Both the position numbers and the translations under genes were made by a program. The notes beneath the pieces were generated by a model. The model searched no databases and had not been told where the DNA came from. It worked only from the letters and a program-made list of their open reading frames with translations. Of a DNA stretch of 64,000 nucleotides, positions 24,974 through 62,321 are shown piece after piece. Each line of letters begins with the position of its first letter. The stretch's first letter is position 1. The stretch lies in IMG/VR virus record IMGVR_UViG_3300042868_005134, positions 62,001 to 126,000 of that record; one strand, given 5' to 3'.

Positions 24974-25066
24974 CTCGATCGCAAAGACCCTGATCGCAGT
25001 GTGGGTATCTTTTTGAGTTGACTGTTTGGCTCTTTTGCAGTATAATTAGTTTTTAAGGGAGCTAAA

Positions 25067-25207
25067 ATGCAAACATACAAACAGCAACTCGACATCGCCA
25101 TGCTACAATTACAAGCATTAATTGACGAAGAATTTGAGTACAACGAAAGTATACAAGACGCTTTTAATGCGCTCGCTTGTGCGCTAGACGAAGTTGTTGC
25201 GGAATAA
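25067..25207 (+). CDS. 46-aa acidic early protein (not in ORF track)
   Basis: MQTYKQQLDIAMLQLQALIDEEFEYNESIQDAFNALACALDEVVAE; promoter plus SD GGGAGC. Confidence 0.7.
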   Translation: MQTYKQQLDIAMLQLQALIDEEFEYNESIQDAFNALACALDEVVAE

Positions 25208-25265
25208 CAACATGCGAATGCGGGGCCCGGTTGACATTTTGGCTAGACCTTGCTATAATACACAC

Positions 25266-25595
25266 ATGACAAAGACAAAACGAACAGCAAGAAGCGACAG
25301 CAACTACGTGATCTACGCTATGACTAGCGAGCGTGGGGACTCATACGTGGGCTTGACACGCAAGGGCTCAGTCACAGTGAACAAGGCAGTACTAGAGCGC
25401 TGGCGCAAGCACAAGAGCCGAGCACGTAACGAGAACCGCATGTGGGCTCTCTATGTGTATCTCAAGACTGGCGGGCTTGACATGACTTGGACGCACACTG
25501 TCATAGACGTCATACGTGGCCGCAAAGAGGCTTATGCCTACGAGCGCGAGCTGGTCAAAATGATAGAGCCCGAGCTCAACGACCAGTACTTGTAA
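25266..25595 (+). CDS. GIY-YIG-like nuclease, leaderless
   Basis: VIYAM...YVGLT...ERWRKH...E..L...P.LN; ATG begins 7 nt after TATAAT. Confidence 0.75.
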   Translation: MTKTKRTARSDSNYVIYAMTSERGDSYVGLTRKGSVTVNKAVLERWRKHKSRARNENRMWALYVYLKTGGLDMTWTHTVIDVIRGRKEAYAYERELVKMIEPELNDQYL

Positions 25596-25669
25596 AAGCC
25601 TTATGGTTGACAGGGTCTCGGAATCCTGTTATAATTAAGGCTACAGTAAACAACTAAGGAGCGAAACTT

Positions 25670-25879
25670 ATGCGTGAAATGACTAGCAAACTGATTGCAA
25701 TGATGGACGAAGGCCTCATCAGTGCAGAAGCTGTGGCAGAGATGGCCCTGGCTTACATGAGCGAAGATGACGTGGCAGAGATGATGCGAGCTAACGACAT
25801 CCTCCTGGACGAAGAAGACGAGGATGACGGACAGCCCGACGAAGCCCAGGAGTGGGAATCTTTTGACGCAGACTGCTAA
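25670..25879 (+). CDS. Acidic early hypothetical protein
   Basis: Promoter plus SD GGAGCGAA; ends DGQPDEAQEWESFDADC. Confidence 0.85.
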   Translation: MREMTSKLIAMMDEGLISAEAVAEMALAYMSEDDVAEMMRANDILLDEEDEDDGQPDEAQEWESFDADC

Positions 25880-25889
25880 GGAGATGGCT

Positions 25890-26033
25890 ATGCAAGCATG
25901 GGACGTCTTACGCAATGGCAAGATCATTGACACTGTATTCTACGACAAGGACTGTACACTGTGGTATGTGCGCCAGGGGCTCATTGAGCACGATGGCTAC
26001 CCGGTTGACATTGTAGTCCAAAAGGCAGTATAA
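25890..26033 (+). CDS. Early hypothetical protein
   Basis: MQAWDVLRNGKIIDTVFY; SD AAGGAG. Confidence 0.7.
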   Translation: MQAWDVLRNGKIIDTVFYDKDCTLWYVRQGLIEHDGYPVDIVVQKAV

Positions 26034-26061
26034 TATACACTTACACACACTAGGAGCGCAT

Positions 26062-26346
26062 ATGAAAGTCAATCACACACTGTACATCTACAAGGCAGAC
26101 AAGCGGTGCAAAAGCGGTGAACGTCTGTTGTCAACCACTGTATGGCAGAACAGAGATGCCGCTGAGATGGCTCGTGAGGTGCGTGAGTTAGAGTACCAAA
26201 CGTGGCCCAAGCGGCAGGGCTACCGCATGGAGTTTGTGCCCACAATGAAGACTGTGAAGAACTTGATGACGGGTGTGGAGATAGAGATAGCACATGACAC
26301 TCCTCGCAGTTGCGACCCATCAAGCGAACTCTACTGGAGCATGTGA
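26062..26346 (+). CDS. Early hypothetical protein
   Basis: Promoter plus GGAGCG; ends TPRSCDPSSELYWSM. Confidence 0.85.
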   Translation: MKVNHTLYIYKADKRCKSGERLLSTTVWQNRDAAEMAREVRELEYQTWPKRQGYRMEFVPTMKTVKNLMTGVEIEIAHDTPRSCDPSSELYWSM

Positions 26347-26546
26347 TGGTCAAATGGGAATGTCAGATGTTCTACAAGGACAAGCTCTATTCAGGACACT
26401 ATTGGACTGATGAGCTTAGTCTGGCCCGTGCCCGCAGAAAGGTTGCGGAATTACAACGATATCATCCTGCCATGCGATTCACATTGACTGATTGGCAAAA
26501 AGGCAGTATAATTGACTTACGCAAACAAACAAAGGAGCTGGCATGA
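26346..26546 (+). CDS. Early hypothetical protein
   Basis: TGATG coupling to the upstream gene. Confidence 0.6.
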   Translation: MVKWECQMFYKDKLYSGHYWTDELSLARARRKVAELQRYHPAMRFTLTDWQKGSIIDLRKQTKELA

Positions 26547-26923
26547 CACGCTATTACGACACACTGGCAGAATTTGAAAGAGACGGCTATGACATCATCG
26601 TGGACAAAAGCTATGAAGACCTCAACCCTCGCGACTGCTTCGACGACTCAGTCTGTGACATTGACGAGATCATCAAGGACATCGATCGCGGCCACCTCGA
26701 ATGGTTCATGCTCAGGGTCCGGGTACTGGTCGAGGGACTTGAGTTGGGCTCAGCTTACCTCGGCGGATGCTTATACGAGGACCCCCGAGAGATCCTTACT
26801 GACGGGACTGCCGAGGACTTCATTGCTGAGGCGATGGTAGAGGCCAAGAGCCAAGTGTACAGACTGAGCCGCAAGTTCACTGAGTTGAGCTATGCTGTGG
26901 ATCGTGAAGGTGTCACGGTATAA
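26543..26923 (+). CDS. Early hypothetical protein
   Basis: Promoter plus GGAGC; GSAYLGGCLY. Confidence 0.85.
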   Translation: MTRYYDTLAEFERDGYDIIVDKSYEDLNPRDCFDDSVCDIDEIIKDIDRGHLEWFMLRVRVLVEGLELGSAYLGGCLYEDPREILTDGTAEDFIAEAMVEAKSQVYRLSRKFTELSYAVDREGVTV

Positions 26924-27013
26924 CCCTGACAGCAGTAGGGTCTTTGCTTTTTGAGTTGACACTCTGCCCAAAAGGCAGTATAATAAACACTTAAACAGCA
27001 AAAAGGAAACGCA

Positions 27014-27274
27014 ATGTCTACAGTGTATAACGCAAACACAGCAAAAGCTAAAGTAATTTATTACAAAGACAAAGAGACATACAAGATTATCTTTGCTTTT
27101 AATGTACACAAAAAAGTAAAAGATAACGGGGACATTGTACACATGTTCCCTACACAAGCAAAATGCGCTTATGTAAGCGGAGATATTAACTACGAGACAC
27201 TACAAGCAGACAAAGAGCGCATTATAGAGCAAGCTAAAAAAACAATGCGCACAAACAGCGTGGAGTTTGTATAA
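27014..27274 (+). CDS. Early hypothetical protein
   Basis: Promoter plus SD AAGGAA. Confidence 0.8.
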   Translation: MSTVYNANTAKAKVIYYKDKETYKIIFAFNVHKKVKDNGDIVHMFPTQAKCAYVSGDINYETLQADKERIIEQAKKTMRTNSVEFV

Positions 27275-27365
27275 CCCTTCAGCCCGTAAGGGCTTTTTAT
27301 AGCACACTTGACATTTTGACTAGAGTGCGCTATAATAAGTTTTTAACAAGCACTAGGAGCGAACT

Positions 27366-27767
27366 ATGCAAATCTTTACTACACTACACACCGACGGCAT
27401 GGGCTATTGGAGTCGCACTGCTACAGCAGTAGACATTACCAAATTGGACTTGCAGTACATTAACAACGAGAGAGACTTCGGCGAGCTGTGTGTATACTTT
27501 ACAACAGACGAGCTGGGATGCAATTGCTGGGAAACTGAAGTTGACGGTCTCATTTACACAGACAAACTGTTTATGACTGAGCTACGTGCTTATTTGCAAA
27601 CAATTGGTTTCTCTGAAGCAGAAGCCGACGACGTTAGCTACAGCGAGCAGGGCATGCAGGGAGACGAGTACGTTAGCTGTGACGTGGGAGCTGTGTTTAT
27701 AGCGGGCTTGGAGCGTTTGGACCCTGCGCATGTTGCAGCAGTATACAAGGAGTGCGAGGATGTTTAA
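27366..27767 (+). CDS. Early hypothetical protein
   Basis: Promoter plus GGAGCGAA; GLIYTD and YSEQGMQG motifs. Confidence 0.85.
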   Translation: MQIFTTLHTDGMGYWSRTATAVDITKLDLQYINNERDFGELCVYFTTDELGCNCWETEVDGLIYTDKLFMTELRAYLQTIGFSEAEADDVSYSEQGMQGDEYVSCDVGAVFIAGLERLDPAHVAAVYKECEDV

Positions 27768-27945
27768 CGACAAGCAAAACAAACTGATGCTGGCGGCTGT
27801 CGAAGCATTACACAAAGCAGACGCATTAATGCAAGAGGCACTAGGTGCCAGCGACGAGTGCTACGACTTACACTGCGGCATCGAAAGCATGGCCGACGAC
27901 CTGCTTGAGCTTATACAAGAGAACAACCCTGCGGAGATGGAATGA
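27760..27945 (+). CDS. Early hypothetical protein
   Basis: Start MFNDKQ with SD. Confidence 0.7.
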   Translation: MFNDKQNKLMLAAVEALHKADALMQEALGASDECYDLHCGIESMADDLLELIQENNPAEME

Positions 27946-28178
27946 CACGTACACAAATAGACGAGGCACTACAGTGGGCGGGCGCTGCAGCAATCATTGC
28001 GGGCCATGTGCTTAACGCTGTAGGGCCCAGCATGTACCCCTACAATATTGCTGTGTTCGCTGTGGGCACAGTACTATTTTTGACGTGGGCCGCGCGAGTG
28101 CGCAATGTACCGCAGGCCGTTGTCAACGTTGTAGCATTGACCATTGGGCTAGTAGGGTTATACAACGCATACAGTTGA
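27942..28178 (+). CDS. Small three-TM membrane protein
   Basis: Hydrophobic; YPYNI motif. Confidence 0.75.
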   Translation: MTRTQIDEALQWAGAAAIIAGHVLNAVGPSMYPYNIAVFAVGTVLFLTWAARVRNVPQAVVNVVALTIGLVGLYNAYS

Positions 28179-28230
28179 CATTTTGGGCAGGGCCTGTTAT
28201 AATACATACATAGCAACAAAGGAGCACACG

Positions 28231-28386
28231 ATGAGAGACGTAATACTAGCAAAGCTGGCAGAGGTAGAAGACTTGCTACAGGCTGCAACGCTGGACGGCG
28301 AGAGCTTGACAGAGATGGCGTGCTTTAGCGAACTAGAAGGTGCGCTTAACACACTAGTACAAGCGGTTGACTACTACGTAGATTGA
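28231..28386 (+). CDS. Early hypothetical protein
   Basis: Start MRDVIL after promoter plus GGAGC. Confidence 0.75.
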   Translation: MRDVILAKLAEVEDLLQAATLDGESLTEMACFSELEGALNTLVQAVDYYVD

Positions 28387-28421
28387 TGCTATAATTAAGA
28401 CTTATTAACAAGGAGCGAACC

Positions 28422-28688
28422 ATGTTAGACATTAGTAAAATTGCCAAAGTGTACAGCGGCAAGCTGGGCACCTGTATGTGCGGATGCGCCGGCAAGTACA
28501 GCTACACGGCAGAAGGTGCTGTGTCAGACAACCCGGGCTATGACGTAAGCGACAGCGTGAACGAGCGCAGTGTACGCATTATCGCTGGCAAGGTCATTGG
28601 CAATGCCAATGCAGTCAACGACGGCAACTTTGTTTATGTAGAGGATGGCAATCGCATCCGTGTTGTTTATTTTAAGGAGCAAGCATGA
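28422..28688 (+). CDS. Early hypothetical protein with CMCGCAG motif
   Basis: Promoter plus GGAGCGAA. Confidence 0.85.
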   Translation: MLDISKIAKVYSGKLGTCMCGCAGKYSYTAEGAVSDNPGYDVSDSVNERSVRIIAGKVIGNANAVNDGNFVYVEDGNRIRVVYFKEQA

Positions 28689-28939
28689 AAGTATCCCAAC
28701 TCATAGAGCAGTTGCAGGACATGAATCCCGAAGCAGACGTACACTTTGCCTATAACTATGGCGACCACTGGCGTACAGAGGTAGCCCCTAGTGTAGGCCG
28801 TGTTGACGAGGGTGCAGTAGTCTACAGCGAGTACCACCGCATGGACAAGATACTTGACGCTGACGGCGACTGCGAGTTTGACGATGACGGCAATGAAGTT
28901 GTCGATGAGTCCACACGCCGCGTAGTGGTATTGAGTTGA
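28685..28939 (+). CDS. Early hypothetical protein
   Basis: MKVSQLIEQLQ..NPEADV; GGAGC. Confidence 0.8.
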   Translation: MKVSQLIEQLQDMNPEADVHFAYNYGDHWRTEVAPSVGRVDEGAVVYSEYHRMDKILDADGDCEFDDDGNEVVDESTRRVVVLS

Positions 28940-28992
28940 CATAGTGAGCAAGTGAACGTATACTATAGACTAAGTTAACAAAAGGAGCAGAG

Positions 28993-29247
28993 ATGATTAC
29001 AGCAGACACACTTGAAGCATTGACTACATACAGCCCACAGTTCCTAACTCGTGCGGCACAGAACGCAGGATACAAGGGCCCGGAGTTCAGCTCTTGTAAG
29101 TTCATTGGCATTACCAATGGTGGTCAGTTCTGCTACACTGCTGTCTTTCATGTGAAAGGCGGCACTGACAGCACAAAGATCTTCTTGTCCTATGACCATG
29201 CTGAGGACAAGGTTATTGCTGACTACCATTTGACAGAGTTGGCATAA
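28993..29247 (+). CDS. Early hypothetical protein
   Basis: Promoter plus GGAGC. Confidence 0.8.
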   Translation: MITADTLEALTTYSPQFLTRAAQNAGYKGPEFSSCKFIGITNGGQFCYTAVFHVKGGTDSTKIFLSYDHAEDKVIADYHLTELA

Positions 29248-29264
29248 GGCGTTATAATTGAAGC

Positions 29265-29440
29265 ATATTAAGTAAAAAGGTTACCTACACCGTTAGGGAC
29301 TGTAAGAGAGGAGCACAGAGGGCACTCTACGCAATCTTACAGTCCATGAAATAGGGCAATAATGCCTGGAGACGCGGCGGAGTATGTAGGAAGTAATGAC
29401 CGTCAAGGCCCGTGAGAGATGCGCTTACAGGTAGACATAG
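29265..29440 (+). ncRNA. Candidate structured ncRNA occupying a promoter cassette
   Basis: Promoter 29230-29258 with no ORF; 11-bp stem 29297-29307/29335-29345; outer stem CCTACA/TGTAGG. Confidence 0.55.
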
Positions 29441-29501
29441 ATTGACAATGGTTCCTTTTTATGTTATAATACATACATCAACAACGCAATAGGAGCGAAC
29501 T

Positions 29502-29711
29502 ATGTCAGCATTGGTAGAAGGCAAAGTGGTTAATGTTGGAGACTACGTGGGCTTTAAATCAGACATCGAGCAGTACGGCAAAATTGTAGAGATCAAACAG
29601 AGCTACATGGGTGCCAGCCTAGTACTAGAGAACGCAAGTGGCTTCTCTGGGGGCTACATAGGCGGGCAAACAATAACCACAGAGCTAGCCAGGGATTGTT
29701 GGATTGATTGA
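29502..29711 (+). CDS. Early hypothetical protein (SH3-like pattern)
   Basis: VGDYVGFKSDIEQYGKI; GGAGCGAA. Confidence 0.85.
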   Translation: MSALVEGKVVNVGDYVGFKSDIEQYGKIVEIKQSYMGASLVLENASGFSGGYIGGQTITTELARDCWID

Positions 29712-29764
29712 CACAACGCCTAATTCATTGTATAATATACACTTACACACACTAGGAGCACACA

Positions 29765-30202
29765 ATGGGAACACGAAGCACAATCGCATTGGAATTCGCA
29801 GACGGCACAGTAGAGCAAGTCTACTGCCACTGGGACGGCTATCTTGAGCACAACGGCAAAATCCTTGCTGAACACTATAGCGACCCGTTTGTTCTGCAGA
29901 AGCTGATTGACTTGGGTGATATGTCCAGCTTGGGCGAGCGCATTGGCACACAGCACGCCTTTGAAAAAGCTCCCGAAGGCGAGTGTACTTTCTACAAGCG
30001 AGATCGCAACGAAGACGGGTGCGGCAAGAAGTCGTTCGTTGACTTCCAGGACTATTTGGCTCATCACCAGTATGAGGAATACGACTACATCCTGCGCAAC
30101 ATTAACGGCAAGGCCACTTGGTTCGTATCGGATCATGACGGAGCCTATGTTGAATTGACGCAGGCTATTATGGACAAACAAGACAACGAGGCCACAGCAT
30201 GA
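29765..30202 (+). CDS. Conserved phage hypothetical protein
   Basis: MGTRS...YCHWDGY...EEYDY. Confidence 0.85.
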   Translation: MGTRSTIALEFADGTVEQVYCHWDGYLEHNGKILAEHYSDPFVLQKLIDLGDMSSLGERIGTQHAFEKAPEGECTFYKRDRNEDGCGKKSFVDFQDYLAHHQYEEYDYILRNINGKATWFVSDHDGAYVELTQAIMDKQDNEATA

Positions 30203-30255
30203 CAGGTTTCAACAGCAAACGGGCCATGGCCCAGGACAAACTTAAGGAGCAGGAT

Positions 30256-30432
30256 ATGAGCAAAATGGCAGAACTGGCATACGACATTGAGCAACTGTAC
30301 ATTGACGGCTTCAACAGTCGAGCAATCGCAGAGGAACTTGGTTGCCCACTTGAGATTGTATTGGGTGCGCTGGCTGAGATGAATGTGGAGGATGCTGAGC
30401 CCTTTGATCCTTACGCAACTGTAAACAGTTAA
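30256..30432 (+). CDS. Small HTH-like early protein
   Basis: Start MSKMAEL after AAGGAGC; SRAIAEELGCPLEIV. Confidence 0.75.
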   Translation: MSKMAELAYDIEQLYIDGFNSRAIAEELGCPLEIVLGALAEMNVEDAEPFDPYATVNS

Positions 30433-30433
30433 T

Positions 30434-30500
30434 GCCACCGTCCGGGCCACTAGGCCTTGCAACTCGCCCTGGCACTTCGCCCGGACTGTGTGGCTTTTTT
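30434..30500 (+). terminator. Long hairpin terminator with large internal insert
   Basis: GCCAC-CGTCCGGGC...GCCCGGAC-TGTGTGGC followed by TTTTTT. Confidence 0.65.
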
Positions 30501-30569
30501 ACAACACTGTGATTTGACACTTTGAGCTTTTGGTTGTATAATTAACACATAGACAGCAAGGAGCACACA

Positions 30570-30713
30570 GTGAAGATTGTAATCAAAGTACCAAAGAAGC
30601 ACAGAGAGCATTTTGTTCTCTTTGCCCAAAATACACCCTTCAAGCAAAAGGTTGTGGAGAGCAAGATCAAATACAAACGTCAACCCAAACACCGAGGCAA
30701 ACACAATGATTGA
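30570..30713 (+). CDS. 47-aa basic peptide, ArfA-like (not in ORF track)
   Basis: GTG start after promoter plus GGAGC; MKIVIKVPKKHREHFVLFAQNTPFKQKVVESKIKYKRQPKHRGKHND. Confidence 0.65.
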   Translation: MKIVIKVPKKHREHFVLFAQNTPFKQKVVESKIKYKRQPKHRGKHND

Positions 30714-30924
30714 GATCCAAGGATTTAGCCCTAAGCAAAAGGCACTGGCAGACATCATGTGGGCCATCAGCACCAAGGAAGGCGTTGATGCGTTCATCGC
30801 AACCCTGCCAAAGGCAGAGCGCCGTGAGTGCGAATTGGTTAAAGAGATGTTGGTCTTGGCCTTCCTGGACGATATTGTTAATACCCAGGAAGCTGACATG
30901 GTTATTGACAAGTTTCGTCTTTGA
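30706..30924 (+). CDS. Early hypothetical protein
   Basis: Start MIEIQGFS. Confidence 0.75.
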   Translation: MIEIQGFSPKQKALADIMWAISTKEGVDAFIATLPKAERRECELVKEMLVLAFLDDIVNTQEADMVIDKFRL

Positions 30925-30965
30925 TGTTATAATACATACTTACACACAGCAACTAGGAGCAACAC

Positions 30966-31235
30966 ATGAAAGCACTACAAGAGTTCATTGCCCAGAAGAA
31001 TCACTGGAATTCATTCTTCAAAGGCGAGCAGTATGAGATTGCCACTGCCAAAGGTCGTCAGCGTGTGGCAGACATGATTGATTCAGCTTTGAGCCCAGAG
31101 AACTTGACCTGCGATGGCGAACTGAGCCGCACAGAAGTCAATCGACGCTACAAGGAACTGATGACTGCGGCCAAGCAGTTGAAGAAGTTGGATCCTAAGG
31201 TTTCTTTCTACGAATACGATGCGGAGGTGGCATGA
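30966..31235 (+). CDS. Early hypothetical protein
   Basis: LSPENLTCDGE motif; promoter plus GGAGC. Confidence 0.85.
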   Translation: MKALQEFIAQKNHWNSFFKGEQYEIATAKGRQRVADMIDSALSPENLTCDGELSRTEVNRRYKELMTAAKQLKKLDPKVSFYEYDAEVA

Positions 31236-31408
31236 TGCCAGTGGCGTTGGAAAGCAACATCCCAATCGAAGAGCTCGAGTTGGTTCGAGCTGAGTATCGC
31301 AACAAAGGCATCAGGATCCGAGTGCGGTATCGTGGTCCTAGACATGATTGGATGCGATTGTATTGTTTGAAGCGGAACGCCCGTGCGTTCAGTGTTTATC
31401 TTAAATAA
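31232..31408 (+). CDS. 58-aa basic protein (not in ORF track)
   Basis: MMPVALESNIPIEEL...RVRYRGPR...AFSVYLK; SD GGAGG. Confidence 0.7.
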   Translation: MMPVALESNIPIEELELVRAEYRNKGIRIRVRYRGPRHDWMRLYCLKRNARAFSVYLK

Positions 31409-31417
31409 GGAGCAACT

Positions 31418-32044
31418 ATGCCTAATTGGTGCAACAACTCAGTGGTTCTAAAACACAACGACCCAGCCATGATTGAACGGGCCCGCAAGGCTTTCAATGG
31501 CGAAGGCCTGCTACAAGAGTTCATTCCAGTGCCGCAGGCTCTGCGTGACACGGTGTCAGGCAGTATGGGCGAGGACAAGCGAGAAGCACACGAAGCACAA
31601 CAAAAAGCCAATGTGGAACAGTATGGCTACGCTAACTGGTATGACTTCTGTGTCAACGAGTGGGGTACCAAGTGGGAGATTGGTGCTGATGGTAATCCAG
31701 CACAGGACATCCCGGGTGGATTGATGTTGGGCTTTGATTCAGCATGGAGTCCTCCTATTGCGGCTTACGAGAAGCTCTTGGAGATGGGCTTCGAGATCGA
31801 AGCCATGTATTACGAACCAGGCATGGCTTATGCCGGCGTCTGGGACAATGGCCACGATGACTACTACGAGTATGGTGGACTGGACAGCGCAGGCATTGCT
31901 GAAACTTTGCCCGCAGAACTAGACGAGGCCTTTGGCATTAGCGAAAGTGTCGCAGAGTGGGAAGCAGAGCAAGAAGAAGAAAACATCGACATCGATCTTG
32001 ATGGCGGGTTGAGTGCTATTAACGAACAGGAACAACAAAAATGA
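31418..32044 (+). CDS. DUF1281/YubB-like ferredoxin-fold protein
   Basis: MPNWCNN, WYDFC..WGTKW, FDSAWSPP, YYEPG. Confidence 0.8.
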   Translation: MPNWCNNSVVLKHNDPAMIERARKAFNGEGLLQEFIPVPQALRDTVSGSMGEDKREAHEAQQKANVEQYGYANWYDFCVNEWGTKWEIGADGNPAQDIPGGLMLGFDSAWSPPIAAYEKLLEMGFEIEAMYYEPGMAYAGVWDNGHDDYYEYGGLDSAGIAETLPAELDEAFGISESVAEWEAEQEEENIDIDLDGGLSAINEQEQQK

Positions 32045-32172
32045 AGACTAATCGACAACTTAACAAAGACCATGCGGGTCGCGAACTGCTTAAGGTTCGT
32101 CCCAAACAACCAGCTTGGGATTTCAAATCATTAGAGGCCGTGATTCGTCAGTGGATCACGCAGGCTAAATGA
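32041..32172 (+). CDS. 43-aa hypothetical peptide (not in ORF track)
   Basis: ATGA overlaps at both ends. Confidence 0.55.
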   Translation: MKTNRQLNKDHAGRELLKVRPKQPAWDFKSLEAVIRQWITQAK

Positions 32173-32426
32173 GCAGGCTAGCACTCTACGGTAGACCATA
32201 TGTGGTGTTCGATGCTACCAATCGAGAGCACAGACAATGGTTCGCCAACTTCAACAAGTCGGGTGCGTGGGGCAACTGTCCGGTTCGTTTTGTAGTTGAT
32301 GACGACCATGGCGATTTGATTACCATGATTCAAAGGCATTTGATCCAGTTCTATGTGGACAAAGAGTTCGCCAAGGATCGGGTGCGCCCAAAAAGTGTTG
32401 TGAAAACACAACGGAAAAAGACTTAG
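32169..32426 (+). CDS. Hypothetical protein
   Basis: RPYVVFDATNREHR...WGNCPVRF. Confidence 0.75.
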   Translation: MSRLALYGRPYVVFDATNREHRQWFANFNKSGAWGNCPVRFVVDDDHGDLITMIQRHLIQFYVDKEFAKDRVRPKSVVKTQRKKT

Positions 32427-32492
32427 GATTGAGTTGACAGGTTAGGGTTTTGGCAGTATAATTACTACTTCAACAACGCAATAGGAACTAAG

Positions 32493-32822
32493 ATGCTCGC
32501 ACTAGACAACATTGAAAGCGTACACAACATGGCTACCCAAGCGGCTGCAAAAGCCACTGAGGACTTCCTTGCCAAACACGGTGACCGAGACGCTTGTGGT
32601 TTTGCTTGGGTCACAGTCTACGAGAAGGGCTCAACCAAGTTGGGTCGCGCATTGAAGGCAGTGGGCTTCAAGCCTGCATACGGCGGCGGACTTCAGCTGT
32701 GGAATCCAAGCGGTAGCTGGACCCAGTGTATCACTGCCAAGGAAGAAGGCGCAGAGGCCTACGCAAAGGTGCTTCAGTCTTTTGGTATTGAGAAGGCTTA
32801 CGCAGGGTCCAGAATGGACTAA
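32493..32822 (+). CDS. Early hypothetical protein
   Basis: ACGFAWV...KEEGAEAYA...SRMD. Confidence 0.85.
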   Translation: MLALDNIESVHNMATQAAAKATEDFLAKHGDRDACGFAWVTVYEKGSTKLGRALKAVGFKPAYGGGLQLWNPSGSWTQCITAKEEGAEAYAKVLQSFGIEKAYAGSRMD

Positions 32823-32940
32823 ACGAATATGGTTTGGTTAGCCAAAAGACATTGACAATTGGCTAACCAGACTGTATAATAAGAACATGCTGAGAAGATA
32901 GGCTTTGAGGCATTAATTTTACACACAGAGGAAATTTAAA

Positions 32941-33297
32941 ATGGCTACAGATAAATTGTTTACGGTTGCTGGTACTTCAGCTCTCAATGGCGTGACCAAG
33001 GTGCGCTTTGCTAACGATCAGATGCGAGTCAAAGTACTTGCCAAGTCTGGTCATACAGATATCAACCTCGTCGAGCTTCCTGAAGCTATGACCAAGTTGG
33101 ACGCAGTCAAGTTCATTAAGAACCTTGATGAGTTCACCAATGTGGTTGAGCAAGTGGCAATTGCCGACTATCTGGATCGCAAGGATGAAGCTCCTGCCAA
33201 GGTTGTTGCCAAAGTCAAGACAGCTCCTGTCAAGACTAAAGCTGCTCCTAAGGCCAAGGCAGTGTCAACTGAAGGCATGGAAGACGCTCCGTTCTAA
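32941..33297 (+). CDS. Hypothetical protein with Lys/Ala-rich tail (possible nucleoid-binding protein)
   Basis: FTVAGTS..KVRFAND; PAKVVAKVKTAPVKTKAAPKAKA. Confidence 0.8.
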   Translation: MATDKLFTVAGTSALNGVTKVRFANDQMRVKVLAKSGHTDINLVELPEAMTKLDAVKFIKNLDEFTNVVEQVAIADYLDRKDEAPAKVVAKVKTAPVKTKAAPKAKAVSTEGMEDAPF

Positions 33298-33335
33298 ACT
33301 GCCGCACCGTATCGCACACTGAGATAATTACTAGT

Positions 33336-33518
33336 ATGCGATACGGTGTTTCATTTTCGGACGATTACATGGGCGGGTGCGTGGTCATCCGTGATTTCAA
33401 AAGCGAACCAGTTGGGCGGGTGCTCTGCTGTATAGTTCGTGACAATAGGTACGAAGCTGAACAAACAGCACAATACCTGTGCGATTTACTCAACAAAGAT
33501 TTAAACAATCAATCATGA
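33336..33518 (+). CDS. Hypothetical protein
   Basis: ORF coupled to the next gene. Confidence 0.55.
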   Translation: MRYGVSFSDDYMGGCVVIRDFKSEPVGRVLCCIVRDNRYEAEQTAQYLCDLLNKDLNNQS

Positions 33519-33706
33519 GCAACTGGGTTCAATACGAAGTATGGTCCGAGGATGGTAGCGGGCAATCGGAACTGATAGACACTACCGCAAGCAGAAAAGA
33601 TGCTTTAAGCATCGCAGAGCGAACACACCGAGAAACAAATGCCATTGTCACTGTCTATGAAGAGACTGTGGACGGTGATTATGAATTGATCAAAGAGTTT
33701 AGTTAA
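33515..33706 (+). CDS. Hypothetical protein
   Basis: Start MSNWVQY (ATGA overlap). Confidence 0.65.
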   Translation: MSNWVQYEVWSEDGSGQSELIDTTASRKDALSIAERTHRETNAIVTVYEETVDGDYELIKEFS

Positions 33707-33712
33707 GATATC

Positions 33713-33797
33713 GCGACTGTGGTGAAATAGGTAGACACAAGAGACTTAAAATCTCTCGCCGAAGGGTGTACCGGTTCGATTCCGGTCAGTCGCACCA
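33713..33797 (+). tRNA. tRNA-Leu(TAA)
   Basis: Cloverleaf, AGAGA-CTTAAAA-TCTCT anticodon arm, long variable arm, GGTTCGA, encoded CCA. Confidence 0.95.
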
Positions 33798-33801
33798 TTT
33801 A

Positions 33802-33879
33802 GGGCCGTTAGCTCATGTTGGTTAGAGCAGTGGACTCATAATCCATTGGTGCTGTGTTCGACTCACAGACGGCCCACCA
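33802..33879 (+). tRNA. tRNA with CAT anticodon, most likely Ile2 (lysidine)
   Basis: GGTTAGAGCAG..GACTCATAATC..TTGGT resembles the bacterial Ile2 pattern; encoded CCA. Confidence 0.88.
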
Positions 33880-33882
33880 TAT

Positions 33883-33959
<77 letters not shown>

Positions 33960-34026
33960 ATACCCATTCGGTTGACAGGGTCTTTGTTTGGTGCTATAAT
34001 ACATACATCGCAACAAGGAGCAGGAC

Positions 34027-34242
34027 ATGGGATACAAGGTAATCGCTGGCAAGGACGAAATGGACATGATGCGAGTCAAATACGGTGCTCGTCCTGGACT
34101 AGAAGGTCCTTTCAACTTCTCGGGCAGAGTGTTGTATTACTGCAACAAGGAAGGCGCCTACTACGATCCTACCACAGACTTTTTTGTAGAGGACAGCGAA
34201 ATGACCCTGATCCGTGATGGGTTTTTGAAACAGTTCGCTTGA
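34027..34242 (+). CDS. Early hypothetical protein
   Basis: GLEGPF...LYY..KEG.YYDPTTDF. Confidence 0.85.
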   Translation: MGYKVIAGKDEMDMMRVKYGARPGLEGPFNFSGRVLYYCNKEGAYYDPTTDFFVEDSEMTLIRDGFLKQFA

Positions 34243-34299
34243 CAGGTTGCCCAAATGGCAGTATAATAAACACATACACAGCAACAAGGAGCGAACCAA

Positions 34300-34617
34300 A
34301 TGGCTAAACTATTAATCACTACACAGGTTTACGAGAACTACGGTGCCCATGACTGGGACGGAGAGGGCGAGTGCCCACAGTACTGGAAAGCCAAAGGCGG
34401 CAATGACTATGTGGTCAAGAAGTTCAAAGGCAGCTCTGCTGATGCTACCTTGGCAGTCATGTGCCTGCGAGCACAGATTGAAAGCGACAACGACCACTTC
34501 CGCGAAACGGTAATCGACTTCCGCATTGTCAAGGACGACTACCTTACAGAGTTCGAGCAAAGCCAGATGGACTACGAAGGCTCCATTCGCTACCCAGCCA
34601 AGGAGCTGGCATGGTAA
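34300..34617 (+). CDS. Early hypothetical protein
   Basis: TQVYENYGAHDWDG...YWKAKGG; GGAGCGAA. Confidence 0.85.
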   Translation: MAKLLITTQVYENYGAHDWDGEGECPQYWKAKGGNDYVVKKFKGSSADATLAVMCLRAQIESDNDHFRETVIDFRIVKDDYLTEFEQSQMDYEGSIRYPAKELAW

Positions 34618-34700
34618 ATCCGGCAATCATCAACTTGGCCATTGTGCTCATGCCCGTATGGATCATGCTCGTAGCAATCATCATAGAGGAGATCATGTAA
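34611..34700 (+). CDS. 29-aa hydrophobic peptide (not in ORF track)
   Basis: MVNPAIINLAIVLMPVWIMLVAIIIEEIM; SD AAGGAGC. Confidence 0.5.
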   Translation: MVNPAIINLAIVLMPVWIMLVAIIIEEIM

Positions 34701-34885
34701 TGGATCAAACAATGCGAGTTATTCCCACAGTGGGCGAAGTGGGCTTGGACACAGAAGCCAGCCCGGGCAACGGTTCCTTCTATGTGCGTCTCTACGATGG
34801 ATCCTACGATATGTGTGGCTTTGACACCATTGAAGAAGCCTACGAAGATTTGGTTGACATCGCCAGCAATCGACAGTATAATTAA
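34700..34885 (+). CDS. Early hypothetical protein
   Basis: Start MDQTMRV, SD GAGGAG. Confidence 0.65.
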   Translation: MDQTMRVIPTVGEVGLDTEASPGNGSFYVRLYDGSYDMCGFDTIEEAYEDLVDIASNRQYN

Positions 34886-34910
34886 CACATAAACAAACAA
34901 GGAGCGAACG

Positions 34911-35150
34911 ATGTTTGATAAAGTAACATTTTATACCGTACACGGCAAAAGCTATGCGCAGAAGCATGGCAACCCATTTGACCGTGGCAGTGCCGACAGC
35001 TACTACGGTCGCCCACGTCAGCCACATCAGGGCGGTGTTGGTGGCGGCAGTGGCCCTCGCGTCACAGAGCTCACAGTGGATGAGCAGGAAGCATACCATG
35101 CGGGCTACGACTACAATGAAGCCACTGGCGACAAGAAGAATTGGTATTAA
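34911..35150 (+). CDS. Early hypothetical protein
   Basis: HGNPFDRGSADSYYGR..PH; GGAGCGAA. Confidence 0.85.
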   Translation: MFDKVTFYTVHGKSYAQKHGNPFDRGSADSYYGRPRQPHQGGVGGGSGPRVTELTVDEQEAYHAGYDYNEATGDKKNWY

Positions 35151-35193
35151 CCTTTCGGTTGACTGGGTCTTTATTTGATGCTATAATTAACAC

Positions 35194-35305
35194 AAGAAGA
35201 AGATAAAAGGTGATCCTCGTATGTAAGAACCCAGCTGAAAGGCAAAAAGGGTTGTAACCAAGGGATCCTAAGAGAGTTTGGAGACTCTGCCCATTATGTA
35301 GTTAG
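35194..35305 (+). ncRNA. Second candidate structured ncRNA in a promoter cassette
   Basis: Promoter 35159-35187 with no ORF; nested stems GATCC/GGATC, AACCC/GGGTT, GCT-GAAA-GGC, AGAGTTT/AGACTCT. Confidence 0.5.
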
Positions 35306-35366
35306 GTTGACAACTAGCCAAATTAGTTGTATAATTAACACTTACACACACTAGGGAGCGACCCAA

Positions 35367-35750
35367 ATGACTAAAGTAAATTATGACAGTTTTGCCTCGT
35401 TTGACATTAACGAGTGCTGTGACCACTTTGACAGTGAGAAGCAGAGCAACTGGAAGAAGATAAACAAGTTCATCGTGGCAGATGGACAAGAGTACGCCCA
35501 CATTATGGAGTCAGAGTTTGACTTTGAAGACACAGGTGATGGCGAGTACGAGGCCTTCCAAGCAGGCGTCAAGTATGCGCTTACCAAGATGAACATTGCC
35601 TTTGAAGCGGCCGCCATAGACCTCCAGGTATGCGAGGTGGACTTGGTAGAGAGCATGGGCTTTGTGCTGGTACGTGCTGACGACGAGCCTGAGGACTTTG
35701 TCAAACGAGTGCTCAAAAAGCCCGTCATGATGGTTGACAGCTGGGTCTAA
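35367..35750 (+). CDS. Acidic early hypothetical protein
   Basis: Promoter plus GGGAGCGA. Confidence 0.85.
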   Translation: MTKVNYDSFASFDINECCDHFDSEKQSNWKKINKFIVADGQEYAHIMESEFDFEDTGDGEYEAFQAGVKYALTKMNIAFEAAAIDLQVCEVDLVESMGFVLVRADDEPEDFVKRVLKKPVMMVDSWV

Positions 35751-35792
35751 ACGTGTTATAATAAACACTTAAACAACACACAGGAGCGACCT

Positions 35793-36086
35793 ATGCGTAC
35801 TATACAAGAGATTAACACAGCTATCATCCAAGGTGGTCTTACCAATGATGAGCTGGTCAGCGTGATTGATGCTGTTAAGTTTGCCCGTAGCCGACTGACA
35901 CAGCTGGCCAAGTACACCTTGCGGGTTGGTGACAGCGTCAAGTTTACCAGCTCAAAGACTGGCATGACCCTACAGGGCCGTGTGGAGAAGATTGCCATTA
36001 AATATGTAACTGTGCGTACAGCACAGGGCGCATGGAGAGTGCCCGCCAACATGTTGTCCAAAATGGATGACTTAGTAGCGGCTTGA
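35793..36086 (+). CDS. Early hypothetical protein with SH3/KOW-like C-terminus
   Basis: LRVGDSVKF...GRVEKIAIKYVTV...WRVPANML. Confidence 0.85.
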   Translation: MRTIQEINTAIIQGGLTNDELVSVIDAVKFARSRLTQLAKYTLRVGDSVKFTSSKTGMTLQGRVEKIAIKYVTVRTAQGAWRVPANMLSKMDDLVAA

Positions 36087-36124
36087 TAGTATAATTACTG
36101 TTTTAAACACGATTGGAGCGAACA

Positions 36125-61251: not shown

Positions 61252-62321
61252 TATGGTCCGCCGCCTCCACCAAATTGTATAGGTTTAGCAGATGTTGTTG
61301 CTGATGGATTATTCACAGGAAAACTTATTGTGTTTTGTCCACTTAATCCTATTACAGCCGCACTTTGAAGACCGCGGACGGCTGCGCCTGTTAATTCACT
61401 TCTTACACCTGTTGATGTTAACGATTTGGCATTTTGATATGTATTTACTGCAGCGATAGCGGTGCTTATAAAATTTGCCGGACTGTCAAATGCCTTGCCA
61501 GATCCTAATGCGCCAAACACTGCTTCGGCTCCAGCAAGGAAACCACCTTGACCAAACAGTGTTCTTGTGCCGCCACCGTATATACTTAACGGACTTGGCA
61601 TAGTGTCATAATGTTCGACACCAAATCCTGGAGGATTACCTTGGCTCACGTAACCTGTGTTATAGGTAACTGCTTCGTAATCTAGTTGCATGGATTGTTC
61701 AGCACTTTGTCCTGAACTCATGTCCATAGCGTCATGATTCCAACTCTTGATAATAGGATTTACTAATTTGTAACTATACCAAGCCTTTTTTGCCATCTGA
61801 TAAATTGTAATATCATTAAAAAACGGCATACTGCTGTTGTTATCTAGACCGTACCTAGAATTCATAAAAGCAGGAGCTTTCATGGCGTTTCTGTTATAGG
61901 CTGTACCATTTTTGGCAGCTTGACTGTCTCCATAGTAGTAACCAAAATAATTTTGCCATAGCTGACCAACTACACCTAAATTGTCATCATGAAAGGCAAT
62001 ATTAATAGGTTGGTATTCTATTTTATTTTGTACAACTTTTTTCCTGTTATACTGATTTAGTGTTTCAGTTTGTATAGTAAACTTAGGAAGATCACATTTC
62101 TTTACCAGCATATTGATTTCGTTTCTATGCTGATAGGTAAAGTTTAAACTTTTTAATGCGTTGGTATTGATGTTAAACACCACATGAAATAAAAACTTTT
62201 GCTTAGGAGCAAGTCTTAAATCACTGTCTACATGGAGCCGTGAAGCATGTTGAAAATCTCCCACATTTCCGCGGGGATTAGTTGCACCACTTACAAATTG
62301 ATTCCAGGCTTTGCTTGTCAT
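61251..62321 (-). CDS. Tail-tube-fold baseplate/tube initiator protein (gp48/gp54-like)
   Basis: LPKFTI..LNQYNRK, FHDD, LVNPII; adjacent to the tube gene. Confidence 0.65.
   Translation of the reverse strand: MTSKAWNQFVSGATNPRGNVGDFQHASRLHVDSDLRLAPKQKFLFHVVFNINTNALKSLNFTYQHRNEINMLVKKCDLPKFTIQTETLNQYNRKKVVQNKIEYQPINIAFHDDNLGVVGQLWQNYFGYYYGDSQAAKNGTAYNRNAMKAPAFMNSRYGLDNNSSMPFFNDITIYQMAKKAWYSYKLVNPIIKSWNHDAMDMSSGQSAEQSMQLDYEAVTYNTGYVSQGNPPGFGVEHYDTMPSPLSIYGGGTRTLFGQGGFLAGAEAVFGALGSGKAFDSPANFISTAIAAVNTYQNAKSLTSTGVRSELTGAAVRGLQSAAVIGLSGQNTISFPVNNPSATTSAKPIQFGGGGGP

Follow-up and report, generated by a model that had tools for sequence, protein, structure and literature searches.

A structured RNA of jumbo phages that matches no Rfam family

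An ORF-less locus in an early-type promoter array

The DNA examined here (the window) is a stretch of 64,000 nucleotides, positions 62,001 to 126,000 of the 383-kb IMG/VR virus record IMGVR_UViG_3300042868_005134, which is rated 100% complete. Large ORFs match the large terminase subunit, a tail tube protein, a UvsX-like recombinase and a DnaB-like helicase. The nearest cultured relative by terminase is Pseudomonas phage PA5oct, at 55.6% identity, and the DNA runs that hold the stretch are lake-water metagenomes. Between about 25 and 36 kb of the window (25000-36100), the + strand carries an early-type array with 18 perfect (12/12) sigma-70 consensus promoters (TTGACA-17/18-TATAAT) within 11 kb, whereas 20.3 promoter-like sites of any quality were expected and 49 were found. 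Each promoter is followed by one or a few small ORFs with an AGGAGC-type ribosome-binding site, and many of the promoters overlap the stop codon of the preceding small ORF, as at 29230-29247. In addition, metatranscriptome contigs from related phages over 28400-31000 join one promoter or RBS region to a later one (for example, 29483 to 29745 and 29713 to 30536) and thereby skip whole promoter-plus-ORF cassettes, so the array appears to vary by cassette gain and loss between strains.

One interval of this array lacks a credible ORF. A sequence-only reading of the DNA had placed a structured RNA of about 175 nt at 29265-29440, and every sequence feature that it described is present. The upstream promoter (29230-29258, +) has TTGACA at 29230-29235, a 17-nt spacer and TATAAT at 29253-29258, and its predicted start near 29265 lies a few nucleotides before the first helix; promoter activity was not tested. 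An 11-bp perfect stem is formed by 29297-29307 and 29335-29345, an inner hairpin AGAG-GGCA-CTCT lies at 29317-29328, a hairpin GGCA-ATAA-TGCC lies at 29355-29366, and an outer stem CCTACA/TGTAGG is formed by 29284-29289 and 29385-29390. The ribosome-binding-site look-alike AGGAGCAC is found at 29309-29316, with no ATG, GTG or TTG 5-10 nt downstream. No + strand ORF of 25 codons or more lies between this promoter and the next; the only one listed, GTG 29412-29492 (26 aa), runs through the next promoter. The sequence folds with an MFE of -52.8 kcal/mol (z = -3.45), and 0 of 200 shuffles fold as well.

The limits proposed by the sequence-only reading are, however, too narrow at the 3' end. Comparison with homologues shows that the element spans 29273-29461 on the + strand (about 190 nt) and overlaps the next sigma-70-type promoter (29442-29470, also a 12/12 match) by about 20 nt. 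The -35 box of this second promoter is the 3' strand of an RNA helix (P6), its spacer is made of the AAU bulge, the end of P6 and the 3' strand of the closing helix P1, and the trailer supplies its -10 box. Only a few homologues, at the IMG/VR loci that we designate L090, L111 and L126, share this arrangement. Most have TGCACA or TGTACA at that position, which is not a promoter, and a long trailer instead.

Homologues, fold and sequence conservation

Relatives of the flanking small proteins exist in IMG/VR, but the ORF-less element is not tied to them. A BLASTN search found a 91% identical copy elsewhere in the array of two related contigs, and split hits in others. From four copies, a 20-nt motif with 16 fixed bases was taken from the 5' core and used to scan IMG/VR, which yielded at least 119 loci. 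After chance hits were removed, 67 distinct full-length copies of 162-255 nt were obtained. A covariance model (CM) built on 48 of them finds 92 hits in the first 100 sources and 24 more in the rest, at 25-195 bits, and thus at least 116 hits in IMG/VR contigs, 70 of which are distinct in one alignment. The homologue set is biased towards sequences that keep the 5' core motif, although one CM hit (L015) lacks it, so the family is wider than the motif. The window copy is the top CM hit (195 bits, E = 2e-54, over 29268-29462), has every invariant position of the family, and is the only copy in the 383-kb genome.

The fold comprises seven helices and two three-way junctions. Helix P1 (29273-29280 with 29454-29461) closes the molecule, with double compensatory changes in five of 8 pairs and 95.6% of cells paired. 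It is followed by the J1/2 strand UUA (29281-29283), which is identical in 70 of 70 distinct sequences. P2 (29284-29289 with 29385-29390) and P3 (29290-29294 with 29376-29380) are stacked and separated on the 3' side by a 4-nt A-N-N-A bulge (29381-29384). Their cells are 92-100% paired, and compensatory changes include C-G to G-C, A-U or U-A at 29288/29386 and G-C to A-U at 29292/29378. The P4 arm (29297-29345) is a variable peripheral arm that consists of the 11-bp stem, of which ten of 11 outer pairs have double changes, an internal loop holding AGGAGCAC, and the inner hairpin. J4/5 (29346-29350) is AUGAA, of which A, G, A and A are invariant in the 48-sequence alignment. The P5 arm (29352-29374) has a closing pair 29352/29374, a stem 29354-29358 / 29363-29367 in which five of 5 pairs have double changes, a tetraloop that is AUAA here but GAAA, GUAA or GCAA in several homologues, and a 3'-side internal loop GGAGAC. 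J2/6 (29391-29399, AAGUAAUGA) is the most conserved single-stranded segment, with GUAAUGA present in 65 of the 66 copies that have the segment. The 3' domain (29400-29451) is formed by P6 (29400-29401 / 29450-29451 and 29402-29406 / 29442-29446, with the AAU bulge at 29447-29449), which encloses the P7 hairpin (29409-29431, loop AGAUGCG at 29417-29423) and a 10-nt purine-rich strand (29432-29441). All P6 and P7 pairs have double changes, for example GUCAA/UUGAC, GUGCA/UGCAC and GUACA/UGUAC.

A lack of covariation, or an intact ORF in homologues, had been specified at the outset as an outcome that would overturn the ncRNA assignment, and both points were examined. On the MAFFT-only alignment, 83.0% of pair cells are canonical against 37-42% when partners are slid by 1-3 columns, with 417 double-change cells against 77-129 and a covariation score of 0.399 against at most 0.103. 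On the CM alignment of 70 distinct sequences, the corresponding values are 86.5% against 37-41%, 625 against 70-145, and 0.406 against at most 0.081. The latter alignment was fitted to the structure of the model and leans towards it; nevertheless, none of 500 shuffles reaches the observed values on four measures, and 1 of 500 does so on the fifth. RNAalifold independently recovers P1-P4, and an independent MFE fold of a divergent copy reproduces the whole design, including a 25-bp P1 (z = -4.6). A mutual-information scan for non-nested pairs gave no pseudoknot and added only the nested pair that closes P5, which is 100% canonical and shows 5 pair types. With regard to coding, the only recurrent start codon is the AUG inside GUAAUGA, which opens frames of 3 to 44 codons with no conserved frame or length. 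Because the element is non-coding, large protein searches, structure prediction and complex prediction were not used. No alternative genetic code was invoked. The RNA strand is fixed as + by constant U-G pairs, which would be A-C on the other strand (that at 29294/29376 is constant in 66/66), and this assignment is supported by the upstream promoter and by the shared orientation with neighbouring tRNAs.

Conservation is concentrated at the junctions, whose strands are close to invariant: UUA, AG (70/70), UU (65/65), AUGAA and GUAAUGA, together with a GGCGG-A strand. The P7 loop is AGAYG in 56 of the 70 distinct sequences. In contrast, P4 is the most variable part, and the 3' domain is replaced by simpler hairpins in divergent members. 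The 5' domain and the two junctions are therefore the functional core. Near-complete genomes of 342-353 kb that carry the RNA have a large terminase only 59-63% identical to that of this phage, yet the RNA core is almost unchanged, and the constraint on the RNA is therefore strong. Five large terminase-related contigs that were tested lack the RNA, but they are only 24-56% complete and so carry no information on its distribution.

An Infernal/Rfam comparison had also been named in advance as a check, and no Rfam 15 family (4227 models) matches the element. At gathering thresholds only three tRNAs are found in the whole window, and at E up to 10 nothing overlaps 29268-29462 in a search of 29150-29550. 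Sixteen homologous loci give only tRNAs and one permuted tmRNA, and a search of locus L041 at E up to 10 gives only one chance lncRNA hit on the opposite strand. ARAGORN finds no tRNA or tmRNA at this place. BLASTN searches of the region and of the RNA alone against INPHARED isolates gave no match at 1e-5 and only chance 22-34-nt matches at E up to 10. CM searches of the cultured phages PA5oct, Phosso, GAP32, T4 and KVP40 found nothing, and Atu_ph07 gave one insignificant 13.9-bit hit. A three-block motif scan of 185,579 prokaryote species genomes gave 0 hits, although the pattern is strict and shows only that close copies are absent. Literature searches found no description of this RNA.

Genomic habitat and expression

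In relatives, the RNA usually lies in or at the head of the phage tRNA array. Of 67 distinct copies, 32 have a same-strand tRNA within 100 nt and 40 have one within 500 nt, and the next gene is most often tRNA-Asp or tRNA-Glu, 10-25 nt away. Three copies lie 5 nt downstream of the end of a tRNA-Glu, some copies sit between two tRNAs inside arrays, and locus L128 (92-519, - strand) has two tandem copies (164.8 and 138.4 bits) that are separated by about 30 nt and followed by a tRNA. Sixteen of the 67 copies have a sigma-70 promoter directly upstream. In the subgroup that lacks one (L037, L041 and similar loci), the RNA is preceded, about 60-100 nt upstream, by a conserved GUUCUUUAAAAA motif and a small hairpin (UAACCCGCAAGGGUUG), and further upstream lies a TGTTATACT extended -10-like box; this may be another processing or promoter signal. 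In some relatives a short conserved element (GGCAUUCAGGUAGNCCCUGAUGUAAGUCCAAUC; L007:2306-2345 and L029:3860-3900) directly follows the trailer, before the ribosome-binding site of the next ORF. This element was not seen near the RNA in the window and was not sought elsewhere.

The phage studied here departs from this pattern. It carries 41 tRNA genes, of which three (a Leu/Met/Arg trio at 33713-33959) lie in the window, 4.2 kb downstream of the RNA, and 38 lie on the minus strand at 355.7-364.3 kb of the genome, about 260 kb away, in two blocks separated by a gap of about 2 kb. It also has a permuted (two-piece) tmRNA with the tag ANANTFEYFETHVALNDERFELAA (genome positions 355745-364320 and 375530-375935 for these features outside the window). 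Relative L041 likewise has a permuted tmRNA inside its tRNA array.

Leader and trailer of the RNA are complementary and extend P1 into a terminal duplex. With at most one mismatch, this A/U-rich duplex has a median of 23 bp, against 6.8 for shuffled trailers, and it is built from several unrelated leader/trailer sequence pairs, which is itself strong covariation. By our reading of the coordinates, the duplex ends about 5 nt before the downstream tRNA in L041, whereas in the copies that follow a tRNA-Glu its 5' strand starts in the 3' CCA of that tRNA. In the window the duplex is only 9-11 bp.

Transcript data had been listed beforehand among the checks on this locus, and four lake or freshwater metatranscriptome assemblies were found to hold fragments of the array from this phage and its relatives. 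They include an 82-nt contig over 29280-29350 and depth over 29338-29504 in three runs. These are assembled contigs, which show presence in RNA libraries but give no ends, strand or level, and DNA carry-over cannot be excluded, so the evidence for expression is weak.

A second ORF-less cassette at 35159-35335 holds another conserved small RNA of about 85-95 nt (about 35209-35291, + strand) under its own promoter, with a GAUCCUC motif and a terminal GAGUUUGGAGACUC hairpin. Thirteen distinct copies were found in IMG/VR loci, and in eight distinct sequence contexts it lies immediately 5' of the RNA studied here, under one promoter. Rfam has no match there at gathering thresholds. RNAalifold predicts a nested fold in which the CCUC is paired, with A-U to G-C changes in two sequences, although this was a single run on 13 sequences without controls.

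Possible roles of the RNA

The observation of a structured, ORF-less element is therefore confirmed, whereas the interpretation offered with it is only partly supported. The proposal of a novel structured ncRNA is strengthened by the homologues, the covariation and the absence of an Rfam match, but the proposal of a decoy for an anti-SD RNA, or of a protein sponge, is not supported. What the analysis itself demonstrates is that the element is transcribable from a consensus sigma-70 promoter, that it folds into P1, a P1/P2/P6 three-way junction, stacked P2 and P3 leading to a P3/P4/P5 junction, and a 3' P6-P7 domain, that its junction strands are nearly invariant, and that its helices covary. 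Beyond this point we rely on inference, namely that the RNA is a stable, trans-acting molecule, which in most relatives would be co-transcribed with the tRNA array, closed by a terminal duplex that abuts the neighbouring tRNAs, and released from it. A duplex of about two helical turns formed by the leader and trailer of a stable RNA is the standard substrate by which 16S and 23S rRNAs are excised by RNase III. By analogy, host dsRNA and tRNA processing enzymes (RNase III, RNase P cutting at the adjacent tRNA, and 3' trimming) would release this RNA, although cleavage was not shown, and the phage has no RNase III gene of its own. In this view, the gene of the present phage has moved into the early promoter array, transcription starts right at a shortened P1 so that the RNA may be born close to its processed form, and the 3' end has been reused as the next promoter. 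The function of the RNA is unknown, and it is inferred more weakly that the conserved core binds a partner from the tRNA or translation apparatus, and that the SD-like AGGAGC is an incidental feature of a variable arm.

We assign a probability of roughly 0.55 to this combined reading. That the element is a conserved structured non-coding RNA is close to certain, that it is a processed, trans-acting stable RNA is somewhat more likely than not, and that it acts on the tRNA or translation apparatus is tentative. No experiment or raw-read data show the ends, abundance or stability of the RNA. In the window there is neither a terminator nor a long terminal duplex, so the RNA may exist only as the 5' part of a longer mRNA, and the adjacency to tRNAs in relatives could be inherited synteny rather than a functional link. 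No partner was identified, and the genome has no Ro60/TROVE, reverse transcriptase, RtcB or RNase III gene. A bolder but unlikely possibility is that the RNA is a phage-made functional partner of the tRNA system with a new activity, such as a tRNA-binding or tRNA-sequestering RNA, or a catalytic RNA that helps mature or protect the phage's own tRNA set. This is suggested by its most frequent position immediately 5' of tRNA-Asp or tRNA-Glu, and by its commonest P7 loop, AGAYG, which displays GAY, the Asp codon. The latter point is only a lead because divergent members lack the loop.

Among the alternatives, a cis-acting leader survives best, although it is unlikely. The fold would then be a riboswitch- or attenuator-like sensor that controls transcription or processing of the downstream tRNA array in relatives, or of ORF 29502-29711 here. 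The RNA is promoter-proximal and at the head of tRNA arrays in many loci, and a P1-closed multi-helix junction with invariant junction nucleotides is typical of aptamers. However, neither a terminator-like hairpin with a U tract nor alternative pairing of the P1 3' strand was seen by eye in the trailers, which are simply the complement of the leader. No riboswitch family matches, and ligand binding was not assayed, so that an aptamer-like core without a visible expression platform leaves membership among riboswitches undecided. The copies between tRNAs and the tandem locus also argue against this reading, as does the fact that the downstream gene in the window has its own consensus promoter inside the 3' end of the RNA.

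A ribozyme that either defines its own ends within the polycistronic tRNA transcript by self-cleavage or acts on the tRNA precursors is less likely still. The short, invariant strands of the three-way junction (UUA / GUAAUGA / UU) and the location in precursor transcripts that need cutting are compatible with this idea. The hammerhead core of CUGANGA, GAA and a NUH cleavage site is nevertheless not present, because the junction strands are UUA, (C/A)AGUAAUGA and UU, such that GUAAUGA replaces CUGANGA and UU replaces GAA. No Rfam ribozyme or RNase P model hits even at E up to 10. The P4 pseudoknot and the conserved regions CR-I and CR-V of RNase P RNA were not found, by a motif comparison made by eye only, and no long-range non-nested covariation was detected.

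A similarly improbable reading is an RNA-only architectural particle resembling ROOL and GOLLD, which are ornate structured RNAs of phages and prophages that are often found near tRNA islands, have no known function or protein partner (PMC12286853), and self-assemble into cages. The genomic habitat is the same, several homologues have GNRA-type tetraloops on P5, and short RNAs can also form large assemblies (bioRxiv 10.64898/2026.07.01.735769). However, the present RNA is three to four times smaller (GOLLD members often exceed 800 nt), its fold differs, no self-complementary loops were seen and the ROOL and GOLLD models do not match; oligomerization was not assessed.

The decoy hypothesis, in which the exposed AGGAGC would titrate ribosomes, an anti-SD small RNA or an SD-binding protein, is very unlikely. 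Although AGGAGCAC lies partly in an internal loop and about a third of homologues have AGGA there, AGGAGC occurs in only 7 of 70 distinct copies, and others carry GAGGAC, GAUGAC, GACGAC, GAUGGA or CGCGAG. The GAUCCUC-bearing RNA is probably the postulated anti-SD RNA, but in four (L029, L036, L071 and L092) of the seven contexts whose P4 loop was read, the loop is GAUGAC or GACGAC, so complementarity is not kept, and the CCUC is itself predicted to be paired. A decayed or very small protein gene starting at the invariant AUG at 29396 is least likely, because although 26 of 67 copies have a 12-codon frame, length changes in P7 shift the frame, substitutions are pairwise compensatory rather than synonymous, and the upstream purines are paired in P2.

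The phage T4 species 1 and species 2 RNAs (rnaC and rnaD; 139 and 119 nt) are small stable RNAs of unknown function that are encoded on the same strand inside a phage tRNA cluster and directly abut a tRNA, and most homologues of the present RNA, which is of the same order of size, are likewise embedded in a tRNA cluster on the same strand. However, the CM scores at most 5.3 bits over the T4 tRNA region with filters off, a whole-genome search found nothing, and rnaC ends in a tRNA-like T-arm sequence that this RNA lacks. Bacterial Y RNAs (YrlA), some of which are phage-encoded, also have a structured module closed by a long duplex of the 5' and 3' ends (PMC4201824). In this case the terminal duplex has no conserved sequence or bulge and differs completely between subgroups, no tRNA-like T-arm was seen, and a Ro60 gene (PF05731) is absent from the 383-kb genome while the control genomes are detected, although a host-encoded Ro60 cannot be excluded. 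A retron is not supported, as there is no RVT_1 anywhere in the genome and the neighbours are small ORFs or tRNAs.

Orphan structured RNAs with this much covariation are uncommon, and past examples have turned out to be ribozymes, riboswitches, RNP scaffolds or self-assembling particles. The present RNA is compact enough for crystallography or cryo-EM, and it is much better conserved than the terminase across a large group of uncultivated freshwater jumbo myoviruses. The window copy adds an oddity of gene architecture in which a strand of an RNA helix is reused as the -35 box of the next promoter. The family also occupies the same unexplained niche, phage tRNA islands, as the T4 species 1/2 RNAs, ROOL and GOLLD. 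A third, unrelated family in that niche suggests that phage tRNA arrays regularly carry RNA cargo with a common purpose that has yet to be identified.
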